Assembly: GCA_002269645.1 (NCBI GenBank)
Contig: NIVC01000284.1
Coordinates: 645,525 to 709,524 of the forward strand
Reading direction: 5' to 3'
Source of the DNA: Macrostomum lignano
Lineage: Eukaryota
Length of the DNA stretch: 64,000 nt
The position numbers and the translations under genes are program-made. Below are positions 41,705 through 51,739 of this stretch, one piece after another. The first letter of the stretch is position 1, and the number at the start of each line of letters is the position of its first letter. The notes under the pieces are model-generated. The model saw only the letters and a program-made list of their open reading frames with translations. It searched no databases and was not told the origin of the DNA.

Positions 41705-44700
41705 ATGCGCCCTCTATGGCTGCTTCTCCTATCAACCGCCGCGACCTTGACTGCTGCCGCCCCGGTCACCGTCACATTCCCGTCCGGAGAGGAGTTCCTC
41801 CCCCTGGACAATCAGTCACCGCCCGGCCATGAGGATCCCGAAGACACGGAAAGCTTGGCGTTCGAACGTCGACATGAAAACGCGAGGCTGGCCTGGTGAG
41901 CTGGCAAGCTGAACTACTTCTAGTAGCTATATGGAGCATGATATGAAAATTTTATCTTAAAATCTTACAGGGGCCTGACTTTAAACGATTGGTGCGGCAA
42001 GAAGTGTCAGATCTTCCGAGCTCACCCGGATCTGATTGGCTGCCTGTCGGACATGAACACCGAACTGCAGCATGCGGACGGTGGCCGAGTTCGATTGGTG
42101 CGCGGGTACCTGCCGCTGTCCGAGGCTGGGGTTGCACCAGCTTTTCCCGTTAACTACCATGCTGCGGGTGAGTGATACTTCTACTGCTACTACTACTACT
42201 ACTACTACTACTACTACTACTACTACTACTACTACTACTACTACTACTACTACTACTACTACTACTACTACTACTACTACTACTACTACTACTACTACTA
42301 CTACTACTACTACTACTACTACTACTACTACTACTACTACTACTACTACTACTACTACTACTACTACTACTACTACTACTACTTCCCCTGCAGGATCGGC
42401 AGCTGAAATTTCCCTGCGCTCCGCCGTGACCCCGGCTGACCCCGGCGCTTCCTCCTCCGCGGCCGCCGCAGACTCGCAGCGCCGTCTTGCGGCCGCATTC
42501 GCTCACGCATGCGCCACCCGCCTGAGCGCCGCCGGCTGGGACTTCGGCCTCGTCGCCAATGTCAACCAGCAGTCAACCCTGACGCTGCTGCTGCAGAGCC
42601 GCAGGCGGCCATCAAAGCTGCTGTTTCAGGCCGCCCCAGGTAGCGACTTCGCCGACTCCGCCGAGCTGGAGGCCTGGACTCGCCGGCACTGGGAGCTTGG
42701 TTTCCTGGCCTCGGGCTTCAACGCTAGCGCCGAGCTCGCCGACTGCCAGCTGACCAACCAGCAGCCCTGGACGTCGGCTTCGAAAAGCGCCGAGGAGGCG
42801 GTCGGTCCCGGGGACTCGCTGCCGGTGCCGCCCGACTCGCCCGACTATTCCAGTCTGATGCAGTACCCAGCCTCCTCTGGGGATGGCCCAGACCGGGGAG
42901 CTCTGGAGTTCCCGGGCTGTCCGAAACTGCTGAGCAGCTGGGAGCGCCACATCAGCTGCGGACAGCGGCTGATGGCGCCCAGGATGTTCCAGTCAGTCCG
43001 GAGGCTGGACGCCATGATGAGGCTGCGATGGCCAGACCGGCACCTGAAGGTTGCGGCGGGATGGGAGTCGCCGACTGGAGGTTTGTGTGGACAGCTCATA
43101 AATATAGAACTGTCCAGGTAGATAAATCAGATCCTGCATCCCAGGTAGATAGATCAGATCCCACATCCCAGGTAGATAGATCAGATCCCACACCCCAGGT
43201 AGATAGATCAGATCCCACATCCCAGTTAGATAAATCAGATCCCACATCCCAGGTAGATAGATCAGATCCCAAACCCCAGGTAGATAGATCAGATCCCACA
43301 TCCCAGGTAGATAAATCAGATCCCACACCCCAGGTAGATAAATCAGATCCCACACCCCAGGTACGCTCGTAGATAGATCAGATACCACATCCCAGGTAGA
43401 TAGATCAGATCCCACACCCCAGGTAGATAGATCAGATACCACATCCCAGGTAGATAGATCAGATCCCACACCCCAGGTAGATAGATCAGATACCACATCC
43501 CAGTTAGATAGATCAGATCCCACACCCCAGGTAGATAAATCAGGTCCCACGTCCCAGGTAGATAGATCAGATCCCACACCCCAGGTAGATAGATCAGATA
43601 CCACATCCCAGGTAGATAGATCAGATCCCACACCCCAGGTAGATAGATCAGATCCTACATCCCAGGTAGATAGATCAGATCCCACATCCCAGGTAGATAG
43701 ATCAGATCCCACATCCCAGTTAGATAGATCAGATCCCACATCCCAGGTAGATAGATCAGATCCAACACCCCAGGTAGATAGATCAGATACCACATCCCAG
43801 ATAGATCAGATCCCGCAGACACACTGCTCTACTCATAGTAGCAATCAAAGCGTCAAACACACCATAAATGCCAATCAAATCCCGCCCCAGACCGTCCCAG
43901 CCTTCGCAGCGACGGGCGTCAGCTGGAATTGGAGCTTCTCGGCCCTGACGGCGAAGCCATCGGCGAGCTCGACCTCCTGCGCCAGGTCGCCAGCCTCGCC
44001 AGGTGCTCCGGCTTCGATTTCATCGACATTCTCGACGCCGACGCCGACAATTCGACGGATTCGACCTCGACGCCTCGCCTTCAGCTGGCGGTTCTGAAGC
44101 AGCGGCAGCCGGCTGCGATGGGTTCGCCGCTGAACCCTCCGCGGCCTGTGGTGTTCCACCAGACTGTGGGTGCCCAGCTGCTGCCTGTGGAGCCACCCGC
44201 CAGGCTGGCGCACGACTATGACGTCACTGGCATGGAGGCCCTGGCCTTGGCCGACCGCCCGCTGTTCGGTGGGTTTGTGGAAGCCTGTCTGTCTGTCTGT
44301 CTGTCTGTCTGTCTGTCTGTCTCTCTGTCTGTCTGTCTGTCTGTCTGTCTGTCTGTCTGTCTGTCTGTCTGTCTGTCTGTCTGTCTGTCTGTCTGTCTGT
44401 CTGTCTGTCTGTCTGTCTGTCTGTCTGTCTGTCTGTCTGTCTGTCTGTCTGTCTGTCTGTCTGTCTGTCTGTCTGTCTGTCTGTCTGTCTGTCTGTCTGT
44501 CTGTCTGTCTGTCTGTCTGTCTGTCTGTCTGTCTGTCTGTCTGTTGTAGTTATGCCTTATTCTCCCATACATCTATCGTTTGTTGTTCTATCTGAATAAC
44601 ACAGTGATTTGAGTCACTTGTTCACTCGCTCAATCTGTCCACCCAGACGGCTCCCTGGACCCGGCCACGCCGCTCGGAAGCCACGCACGCCTGGGAATGT

Positions 44701-50700: not shown

Positions 50701-51739
50701 AAATTCCTGATGCTGATATTTGTCTTAGTGCCAAAGCAAGTATTTTGAGCTACAAACAACCTCAGCAAGATCAAGATGAGCCCCAGAACTGTGAACCATA
50801 TGCTAGGCTGTCGAACGAATGCCATTGGCTTTGTGATCGAAGCGCTCGACAGAGGTGAACACCCAAAGGACACTGCAAGGTTGCTGAATTTAAAAGAAAA
50901 GATGGTTTACAGCATCCATCAGCGCGTTGAAATCACTGCTGGGCGAGATCGCCTACGAAAGGGTGGCAAATTGCAGAAATGCAGCAGAAGTTAAAGGAAC
51001 AGTCCCATTTGGTTATCAGATTTTGACTATGACCAGAGCTCTGGAAAAGCGACTGAAAACTGTTGGTACAGACAAGGACATTCCAGCGGTACGCAACAAC
51101 CGCAGACTGTTGCGAGAAGGCAGGAATTGGCCGAATGGCTCACGAGTGTTTGGACCAAGTTGATGCTTGTTGGACCAAATTAAATGCCGCTGTGCAAGCC
51201 TTGCTACCATAGACAAAATTTATCTTGGATTAAATTCAATGCGTGTAGGCCCAAATGAGTCACAATTGTACTTTCTGTGATAAGAATTCTTGTACCTGTA
51301 CGTCTTGACACAGTTCATGAGGCTTAACGTAAAAAAGTTGTTCAAATCCGACGTAAATCCTATTCTAATCTACAAAAACGTCACAATTTCTCACACAATC
51401 CAGGTGAAAGTCTGGCTGCGAGACGAAGCAGACGTCAAGAGCATGCTCGCCGAGCTGAAGGTGCTCTTCCTGTACAACAGGCGAGTCACCTCGGTGACGA
51501 TCTTCGTGCTGGACGGCCGCTCGGTCAGCCAAGTGGCATCGCATCTGGACACGGAGTTCGGTGACTGGCTTCAGCTGGCCTGCCCCGCCAACTCAAGGAG
51601 CTACCTGACGATCCACCGCGTGCTGCCGGTGGATCAACGAGCCGCTGTCGTGTCAGCGGCGCTTCGGGCGTCAGAGGACGCTGAAGTCGAGCTGGCGATG
51701 CACCCGTCGCTGGACGGCTTCGACCTCAACCACCTGTGA
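41705..51739 (+). CDS. Secreted 1023-aa protein with three tandem Hedgehog-N/DD-peptidase (M15)-fold domains and a Cys-containing C-terminal region, no recognisable Hint. Exons 41705-41895, 41971-42167, 42394-43080, 43891-44268, 44647-44725, 44865-45228, 46091-46376, 47312-47865, 51404-51739
   Basis: All 8 introns are GT..AG with matching phases (2,1,1,1,2,0,1,0); summed CDS is 3072 nt. Signal [18 protein letters not shown]. Domain 2, [60 protein letters not shown], aligns by eye with Hedgehog-N ([59 protein letters not shown]). Domains 1 and 3 show the same fold signature (GCL..LVRGY..YHAAGSAAEI..AGWDF; [34 protein letters not shown]). Confidence 0.85.
42180..42382. repeat. (CTA)n microsatellite making up ~90% of intron 42168-42393
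   Basis: Direct reading. Confidence 0.99.
43113..43815. repeat. 27-bp minisatellite (CCCAGGTAGATAGATCAGATCCCACAT), intron 3 of the Hedge-fold gene
   Basis: Tandem units, each containing CAG|GTAG. Confidence 0.95.
44285..44545. repeat. (TCTG)n microsatellite
   Basis: Starts ~16 nt after the donor at 44268. Confidence 0.99.
45226..46020. repeat. 24-bp minisatellite (AAGGTGAACCAATTGGGGTCATAC), intron 6
   Basis: The first, degenerate unit overlaps the real donor AAG|GTGAGG. Confidence 0.95.
46384..47305. repeat. 30-bp minisatellite (GCGGAGCCATAAACCCCCAACCTGTCCCAC), intron 7
   Basis: Runs from ~8 nt after the donor to the acceptor at 47311. Confidence 0.95.
47905..49700. repeat. 11-bp minisatellite (TCTGAGTCTTA), ~1.8 kb, intron 8
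   Basis: Tandem units with higher-order variant blocks. Confidence 0.97.
50183..50245 (+). mobile_element. SINE tRNA-head fragment
   Basis: TGAAAGGTCGGGGTTCGATTCTCGACCCA, identical to the head of copy 4. Confidence 0.6.
50776..51163 (+). pseudogene. Possible degenerate Tc1/IS630-like transposase N-terminal HTH fragment
   Basis: [35 protein letters not shown] resembles paired-like HTH N-termini. Frameshifted; no DDE motif seen. Confidence 0.3.

Follow-up and report, generated by a model that had tools for sequence, protein, structure and literature searches.

The window analysed here is a 64,000-nucleotide stretch of the Macrostomum lignano genome (NCBI GenBank assembly GCA_002269645.1, contig NIVC01000284.1, positions 645,525 to 709,524, forward strand). 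At window positions 41705-51739 (+), nine GT-AG exons obtained by splice-site enumeration translate exactly to a protein of 1012 amino acids (aa), which is the NCBI hypothetical protein BOX15_Mlig010553g1 from M. lignano (here P0001). With a probability that we put at roughly 70%, the locus is an intact, transcribed gene and a fast-evolving ortholog of an ancient secreted family with a fixed four-domain plan, whose LAS-fold domains act as non-catalytic binders joined to a C-terminal module. The family plan comprises a signal peptide, a first LAS-type domain (D1), a Hedge domain as found in Hedgehog (D2), a third LAS-type domain (D3), a polybasic site in most species, and a Cys-rich C-terminal domain predicted to be CD38-like in fold. 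An initial annotation of this DNA had described a protein with three tandem domains of the Hedgehog/DD-peptidase fold. These three were borne out by a profile of D2, a structural model of D3 and the homology of D1 to D3; as an account of the whole protein the description was incomplete, as a fourth conserved domain at the C-terminus (aa ~732-975) had been overlooked.

Domain architecture and family of the encoded protein

Judged by sequence, D2 is securely homologous to the Hedgehog (Hh) N-terminal domain and the flatworm copy is merely very diverged, because both the HH_signal scores of the orthologs and a family profile point to Hh N-domains. The M. lignano protein on its own gave a Pfam HH_signal match with E = 0.012 (15.8 bits versus a gathering score of 22.1, aa 319-403), and all 16 of its weak matches in the PDB were Hh N-domains (best E = 0.11). 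Orthologs matched HH_signal at the equivalent position with E = 1.8e-22 and 2.3e-21. A 13-member family profile that included the flatworm retrieved the N-domains of Shh, Ihh, Dhh and Drosophila Hh from the PDB with E = 3.9e-17 to 1.4e-14, Shh-N being the best; nothing else in the PDB was significant with this profile, and D1, D3 and the C-terminal domain remained without a match. The Hedge motif order that had been quoted for this domain is present verbatim at aa 262-402. In the family, D2 carries a Cys-rich insert, and most orthologs have kept the SLHxEGRA motif and the acidic EAWDE patch.

The order of motifs in D2 (RC.DR.M ... LKV.E.WDE ... SLH.EGRA ... A.CAG.D.V ... AVKK) is that of Hedgehog (Hh/Shh/Ihh/Dhh; PF01085), which is a secreted protein, too. 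In contrast to Hedgehog, the Hedge domain is internal here and comes without CGPG and without a Hint/Hog region, hence without cholesterol. All members have lost the zinc ligands that correspond to D148 and H183, and M. lignano also the one that corresponds to H141; the Cys-rich insert, two flanking LAS domains and the fourth domain are added.

The initial annotation had seen D1 and D3 as more divergent Hedge/M15A copies. The comparisons point to a separate pair of M15A-like repeats and not to diverged Hedge copies: D1 and D3 aligned with each other at an hhalign probability of 99.1% (E = 1.6e-18), whereas D1 aligned with the Hedge core of D2 at 57% probability (E = 1e-4, in the expected register) and D3 with D2 weakly (E = 0.02). 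A D1 hidden Markov model (HMM) matched aa 65-209 of the M. lignano protein with E = 7.6e-32 and recovered both the D1 and the D3 position in every family member. The AlphaFold2 (AF2) model of D3, calculated from 30 D1/D3 sequences, reached a predicted local distance difference test score (pLDDT) of 88.4 and a predicted template-modelling score of 0.82. Its best PDB matches in Foldseek were the L-Ala-D-Glu endopeptidase ChiX, the endolysin LysECD7, LdcB, VanY-type peptidases, and ShhN (6dmy_B, probability 0.97). Among viral models (BFVD), ten matches with E < 1e-3 were found (best E = 2.9e-5, TM-score up to 0.68, 3.0 Å), and those with a name were phage peptidases, several of them explicitly M15/M15A. 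D3 is thus modelled with an M15A-type LAS fold, and D1 is assigned the same fold by its homology to D3. The M15 Pfam models stayed under threshold on D1 and D3, and Pfam gave no match on short homologs that consist of D3 only. Both domains share with M15/M15A LAS peptidases (phage endolysins, MepK, ChiX, LdcB/VanY) the layout GY.T ... H..G.A ... G.G.Y...V.VD.R; they differ from these enzymes in their incomplete sets of zinc ligands, as expected for pseudo-peptidases, and in their setting within a secreted eukaryotic multidomain protein.

LAS enzymes require zinc ligands of the pattern H-x6-D plus H-x-H (PMC6027127). The corresponding positions of the M. lignano protein are H127/E134/T in D1, R364/E371/Q423 in D2 and H568/Q575/Y624 in D3, so that the triads H/E/T, R/E/Q and H/Q/Y given in the initial annotation were exactly reproduced in the alignment. 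The degeneration of these sites had been described for the one protein at hand, where it stands; it is not an oddity of the flatworm, as a complete zinc triad was absent from every domain of all 13 family members. In D2, the first His (SLHxEGRA) is usually kept, the Asp and the last His are lost in all 13, and the zinc centre is most fully dismantled in M. lignano. The first-ligand His of D3 is kept in 9 of the 13 members, and the H-x-H of D1 in several orthologs from molluscs and hemichordates. With the triads incomplete, zinc peptidase activity therefore appears very unlikely.

Within the family, conservation is highest in the C-terminal domain. Its HMM covered aa 732-975 (~245 aa) of the M. 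lignano protein with E = 1e-89 and reached up to 1e-116 in orthologs, and the domain was common to 97 of 111 collected proteins. In large multidomain proteins it adjoins a D1/D3-like domain, just downstream of it. In an AF2 model of the full-length protein (mean pLDDT 70.9), the domain had values of 75-93 and was composed of a helical cap and an alpha/beta domain. Except for a few chains of the Aplysia ADP-ribosyl cyclase (ARC), all of the top 50 PDB matches of this model in Foldseek were CD38 (best E = 4e-4, probability 1.0), with alignments covering about the whole 250-residue target. The predicted fold, the size, the richness in Cys and the extracellular setting resemble CD38, CD157 and the Aplysia cyclase, whereas no sequence similarity to CD38/ARC was detectable and the TM-score was ~0.5. 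With moderate confidence, the domain is therefore predicted to be CD38-like at the level of the fold only. Two motifs picked out by eye (CNxxLxW versus CNKILLW of CD38; NNPxPV...YA..A.G.V.V versus NNPVSVFW...VVHVML of CD38) are not claimed, since hhalign was non-significant and its registers inconsistent; CNxxLxW lies in a predicted helix, and the CNKILLW motif of CD38 is presumably a strand. The active site of CD38 is defined by two Glu and two Trp residues (PMC12605009). Bacterial polymorphic toxins are known to carry ARC domains as their C-terminal toxin modules, and metazoa, choanoflagellates and fungi have acquired such domains from bacteria, the first two of them long ago (PMC3482391; PMC12605009). 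In this light, the C-terminal position of the domain, shared with bacterial Tox-ARC toxins, is suggestive, not conclusive.

The only hydrophobic segment in a Kyte-Doolittle analysis of the M. lignano protein was the N-terminal signal peptide. No GCF, CGP/CGPG or furin motif and no transmembrane segment was found in this protein, and Pfam scans of it and of orthologs gave HH_signal as the only domain, with no Hint, vWA or cadherin domain, in agreement with the lack of CGPGR, GCF/Hint, vWA, cadherin and transmembrane parts claimed before. The Hedge domain is internal, with about 240 aa and among them D1 ahead of it, and therefore cannot present an N-terminal palmitoylated Cys-Gly-Pro-Gly peptide; Hint is absent, and with it the addition of cholesterol. 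The view of a non-lipidated protein thus holds. The M. lignano protein and its orthologs are colinear up to their ends. A downstream Hint exon was considered and rejected, as the other open reading frames (ORFs) of the window that were scanned gave only retroelement domains or no Pfam domains.

Just before the C-terminal domain, 10 of the 13 members have an RRRR-type polybasic, furin-like site, which is absent from the M. lignano, crinoid and starfish members. In the M. lignano model most of aa 638-666 and 722-733 had pLDDT values below 50. Past the C-terminal domain (alignment columns ~1045-1075), another conserved dibasic motif (KRS) and a tail of the form NWE..W follow in most orthologs; both are missing from M. 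lignano.

A HMMER search of 1.84 billion representative sequences yielded 92 relatives. Thirteen of these are colinear proteins of 914-970 aa with ~30% identity (phmmer E = 4e-81 to 2e-59, over aa ~11-990), and the domain HMMs matched all four positions in the colinear orthologs in the same order. M. lignano forms a long branch, with a mean identity of 26.5% versus 36-39% among the other members. As queries for homology searches, the M. lignano protein and a 13-sequence alignment returned only M. lignano entries, and a hemichordate ortholog returned more. Orthologs were found in annelids (Owenia), molluscs (Patella, Crassostrea, Argopecten, Potamilus, Mercenaria, Solemya, Batillaria), echinoderms (Asterias, Acanthaster, Anneissia), hemichordates (Glandiceps, Ptychodera, Saccoglossus) and amphioxus (Branchiostoma, at least two paralogs). 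The homologs in other invertebrates that had been thought plausible thus exist, dozens of colinear orthologs being already in databases. Their database names are 'uncharacterized', 'hypothetical' or, where assigned by rule, 'Hedgehog N-terminal signalling domain-containing protein'. NCBI names one of them (P0103, Branchiostoma lanceolatum, 945 aa) 'SHH', which is misleading for a colinear family member without Hint. No vertebrate, arthropod or nematode member was among the relatives that could be named; as most of the 92 matches lack a source name, this negative covers the named relatives only.

Outside bilaterians, a protein of the sponge Oscarella pearsei (P0037, 2253 aa) is composed of Trypsin, PLAT, D1, Hedge, D3 and the C-terminal domain. 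One choanoflagellate protein has C2 and Peptidase_M15_4 domains followed by a D1-Hedge-D3-C-terminal-domain module at its end, and Didymoeca, likewise a choanoflagellate, has the C-terminal domain as well. Bürglin reported an Oscarella expressed sequence tag with a Hedge domain lacking Hog or vWA (PMC2362128), and P0037 may be the product of that gene. Five metagenome proteins of 2788-4308 aa (P0034, P0036, P0040, P0058, P0060) bear a D3-like and the C-terminal domain at their extreme C-terminus, in a layout reminiscent of polymorphic toxins; P0034, P0036 and P0040 lie on contigs of ~9-14 kb and look intron-less.

Among the closest described counterparts is hedgling, a transmembrane protein of sponges and cnidarians composed of Hedge, vWA and cadherin/EGF domains (Nv 200640, PMC2362128). 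Both are extracellular proteins with a Hedge domain lacking Hint and belong to old, pre-bilaterian lineages. Unlike hedgling, the proteins described here have no vWA, cadherin, EGF or transmembrane part, the Hedge domain is not N-terminal, and its partners are M15A-like repeats and a CD38-like domain.

Gene structure and sequence surroundings

The nine-exon, phase-consistent gene with a signal peptide proposed in the initial annotation was recovered, all eight introns being of the GT-AG type. The proposed length of 1023 aa was not: the annotated protein is 11 aa shorter, and at least one junction differs. A draft of the spliced protein searched against an index of 5.8 billion proteins had only two matches, P0001 and a shorter alternative model of the gene (P0002, UniProt A0A1I8J987).

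The exons lie on the (+) strand of the window. Exon 1 (41705-41895, aa 1-64) contains the start codon and the signal peptide and ends at the donor GTGAGC. Exon 2 (41971-42167, aa 64-129) encodes the first half of D1, and exon 3 (42394-43080, aa 130-358) its second half, a linker and the N-terminal part of D2 up to GWESPTG. The Hedge core (GFDF ... RLQLAVLKQ) and a further linker are encoded by exon 4 (43891-44268, aa 359-484). Exon 5 (44647-44725, aa 485-510) is a 79-nt micro-exon that is required for an exact match to P0001 and, by the ortholog alignment, holds the family-invariant residues D485 and F503. D3 with its triad positions is found in exon 6 (44865-45228, aa 511-632), and exon 7 (46091-46376, aa 633-727) encodes a Pro-rich linker at the place of the orthologs' polybasic site. 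The C-terminal domain is divided between exon 8 (47345-47865, aa 728-901), which encodes its N-terminal, helical Cys-rich part, and exon 9 (51404-51739, aa 902-1012 and stop codon), which encodes the alpha/beta part and a disordered tail.

At the exon junctions inspected, the ortholog alignment was ungapped on both sides. An alternative junction of exons 3 and 4 (donor 43118, acceptor 43900) would add 9 aa and was discarded, as the orthologs fit the annotated GWESPTG|DRPSLRS instead; the exon 3 donor at 43081 is backed by the identity to the annotated protein and by the ortholog alignment. The GenBank annotation of the M. lignano assembly was built from genome-guided RNA-seq assemblies and not ab initio (PMC5730564), so that the junctions have indirect transcript support. 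A strong acceptor-like site at 41688-41707 (ttccc atctcttcag ctccttattt gcag|A) stops a single base short of the ATG. Spliced-leader trans-splicing affects 38.8% of M. lignano genes (PMC5730564), and this site could be a trans-splice acceptor that sets the 5' end of the mRNA.

The alternative model P0002, which skips part of the Hedge domain, represents either another isoform or an older, faulty gene model. Its UniProt name, 'PKS_KS domain-containing protein', seems to be a false positive of rule-based naming, as Pfam found no ketosynthase domain in P0001, nearly all of whose sequence recurs in P0002.

That the introns are packed with repeats, as initially claimed, was confirmed by Tandem Repeats Finder, according to which tandem repeats make up most of six of the eight; this is why the gene shows no long ORF. 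Intron 2 (42168-42393) is nearly all (TAC)69, intron 3 (43081-43890) holds 26 copies of a 27-bp minisatellite, intron 4 (44269-44646) is made up of (CTGT)65, and introns 6 (45229-46090) and 7 (46377-47344) contain a 24-bp minisatellite in 32 copies and a 29/30-bp minisatellite in 30 copies, respectively. The 3.5-kb intron 8 (47866-51403) combines an 11-bp repeat in 165 copies (47900-49699) with a transposase-like helix-turn-helix remnant (~50749-50991). In the latter, a short ORF (50749-50991, +) has weak helix-turn-helix matches (HTH_28, E = 0.003) resembling the N-terminus of a DNA transposase, and is probably a transposon remnant. Upstream of the gene, a (TGTC)n microsatellite (41403-41652, period 4, 62.8 copies, Tandem Repeats Finder) ends ~50 bp before the ATG. 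More than half of the M. lignano genome is repetitive, and simple and tandem repeats account for 15% (PMC5730564); repeat-filled introns are ordinary in this genome.

Micro- and minisatellites are very dense throughout the window (e.g., 8200-8898, 22113-23229, 23514-24335, 25287-26151, 38989-39822, 40000-40371 and 52626-53516) and give rise, on either strand, to long ORFs that are spurious (e.g., tracts of CLSV, TATAL and poly-S/V/L). A gag-protease fragment of a long-terminal-repeat retrotransposon is located at 31109-32950 (+), with matches to Pfam gag-asp_proteas (E = 1.9e-8), PNMA/gag-like and RVP; it has a zinc knuckle of CCHC-like type and is not followed by an ORF for reverse transcriptase. 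Downstream of the gene, two ORFs (54168-54752 and 56769-57392, +) had no Pfam match and no Hint-like sequence was seen in them; possibly they belong, as exons, to uncharacterised genes nearby.

Candidate functions of the protein

In the reading that we prefer, the three LAS-fold domains would be extracellular, non-catalytic binding modules (pseudo-peptidases), serving neither as a ligand of Patched nor as a zinc peptidase, and would deliver or regulate the C-terminal module. In most species, a proprotein convertase would free this module at the polybasic site; in M. lignano it would stay tethered. The roles suggested in the initial annotation, a multivalent binder of matrix or glycans, a decoy of the Hedgehog pathway or a pseudo-peptidase that binds peptidoglycan, are likewise candidates. 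Several points weigh against the preferred reading. Its preference for binding over catalysis is drawn solely from the missing zinc ligands; given the His that most D3 copies retain and the H-x-H of D1 in many orthologs, some other chemistry is still conceivable. Cleavage by furin is likewise deduced from the polybasic motif. The flatworm Hedge domain alone falls under the Pfam threshold, and its N-terminal half was modelled by AF2 with pLDDT values below 50. The likeness to CD38 comes from one AF2 model, based on an alignment of 15 sequences, with a Foldseek TM-score of ~0.5 and a root-mean-square deviation of 8-9 Å. Pfam found nothing at E ≤ 10 in ten diverse C-terminal domains, and hhalign of the C-terminal-domain profile versus human CD38 (the sequence of which was checked against the PDB) and the Aplysia cyclase gave E ~ 0.15 in inconsistent registers.

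The zinc sites also bear on two other functions, both of which we hold to be improbable. In one, the Hedge domain would be a ligand or decoy of the Hedgehog pathway that binds Patched, Ihog/CDO or HHIP-like partners and tunes Hh signalling without lipid anchors. The true homology of D2 to the Hh N-domain and the retention of SLHxEGRA and the EAWDE patch in most orthologs speak for this. The zinc centre forms much of the surface by which Shh is contacted by Ptch1 and HHIP, however, and it is dismantled in every member, most of all in M. lignano (R/E/Q). The Hedge domain is, moreover, internal without a palmitoylated N-terminus, has no Hint for cholesterol attachment, and is always accompanied by D1, D3 and the C-terminal domain, the choanoflagellate included. 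In the other, at least one LAS domain would cleave peptide bonds in peptidoglycan or the extracellular matrix, in the manner of an antibacterial lysin-like effector. Such an active metallopeptidase would fit the M15A endolysin fold of D3 and D1, the first-ligand His of D3 in 9 of 13 members together with the H-x-H of D1 in several molluscs and hemichordates, and the separate, Pfam-detected Peptidase_M15_4 domain of the choanoflagellate relative. It is opposed by the finding that at least one of the three zinc ligands is missing from every domain in all 13 members, and by the sub-threshold scores of the M15 Pfam models on D1 and D3.

Somewhat more room has to be given to the possibility that the C-terminal domain is the effector, which we still regard as rather unlikely: an extracellular NAD(P)+ glycohydrolase or cyclase, or a toxin-like NADase derived from a polymorphic-toxin ARC, for which the LAS domains would be targeting or pre-toxin modules and which would be released at the polybasic site. 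Its fold matches are exclusively to CD38/ADP-ribosyl cyclase, ARC domains occur as toxin C-termini and as metazoan, choanoflagellate and fungal acquisitions (PMC3482391; PMC12605009), very long proteins (2.8-4.3 kaa) end with a D3-like plus C-terminal domain, and the polybasic site lies ahead of the domain. Against it stand the lack of sequence-level similarity to ARC at a TM-score of ~0.5, and the catalytic Glu and Trp pairs of CD38, for which no counterparts could be placed; the residue at the Glu226 position, as judged from a single weak hhalign register, varies across the family. An annotation artefact or a decaying pseudogene in a repeat-rich region is very improbable, and is the only rival that can be excluded by sequence alone. 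The gene is indeed embedded in satellites, and M. lignano is the most divergent member (26.5% versus 36-39% identity), in which the polybasic site and a number of conserved residues are gone. Nevertheless, the nine GT-AG exons form one uninterrupted reading frame, the Cys and core residues that are invariant in the family are kept (invariance being defined with the M. lignano row included), the full-length colinear alignment reaches E = 4e-81, the annotation is based on RNA-seq, and AF2 folds D1, D3 and the C-terminal domain confidently.

Implications for the Hedge domain

No paper describing this family turned up in literature searches by organism, domain, protein name and ortholog locus tag. 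Hedge domains without Hint (hedgling, PMC2362128), pseudo-LAS domains and the ARC fold are each known; their combination in one conserved protein was not found described. The finding is less surprising than the initial annotation held, since the large family to which the M. lignano protein belongs, as a divergent member, is already flagged in databases. In a more speculative and rather unlikely extension of the preferred reading, the family would be a second ancient Hint-free Hedge lineage, and maybe the original context from which Hedgehog took its signalling domain, in the form of three binding domains derived from cell-wall peptidases and joined to a CD38-like module that handles nucleotides or stems from a toxin, with the C-terminal domain as a new, sequence-divergent branch of the ADP-ribosyl cyclase fold that has its own extracellular activity or ligand. 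The lineage would then predate animals, because the D1-Hedge-D3-C-terminal-domain module occurs in a choanoflagellate and a sponge.

The Hedge domain is usually discussed in two contexts, together with Hint and in hedgling. To these the proteins described here add a third, which is conserved and extends from choanoflagellates and a sponge to spiralians and invertebrate deuterostomes. The presence of Hedge beside M15A-like repeats in choanoflagellate and sponge argues for an old derivation from peptidoglycan peptidases, which is hard to reconcile with a transfer into the cnidarian ancestor (PMC6027127). The family offers a natural series of zinc-site-dead Hedge domains in which the non-catalytic role of the fold can be addressed; M. 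lignano is amenable to transgenesis (PMC5730564), and the more conservative orthologs suit biochemical work. If the C-terminal domain is truly CD38-like, a Hedgehog-type domain would be linked to NAD-type chemistry in one secreted protein.

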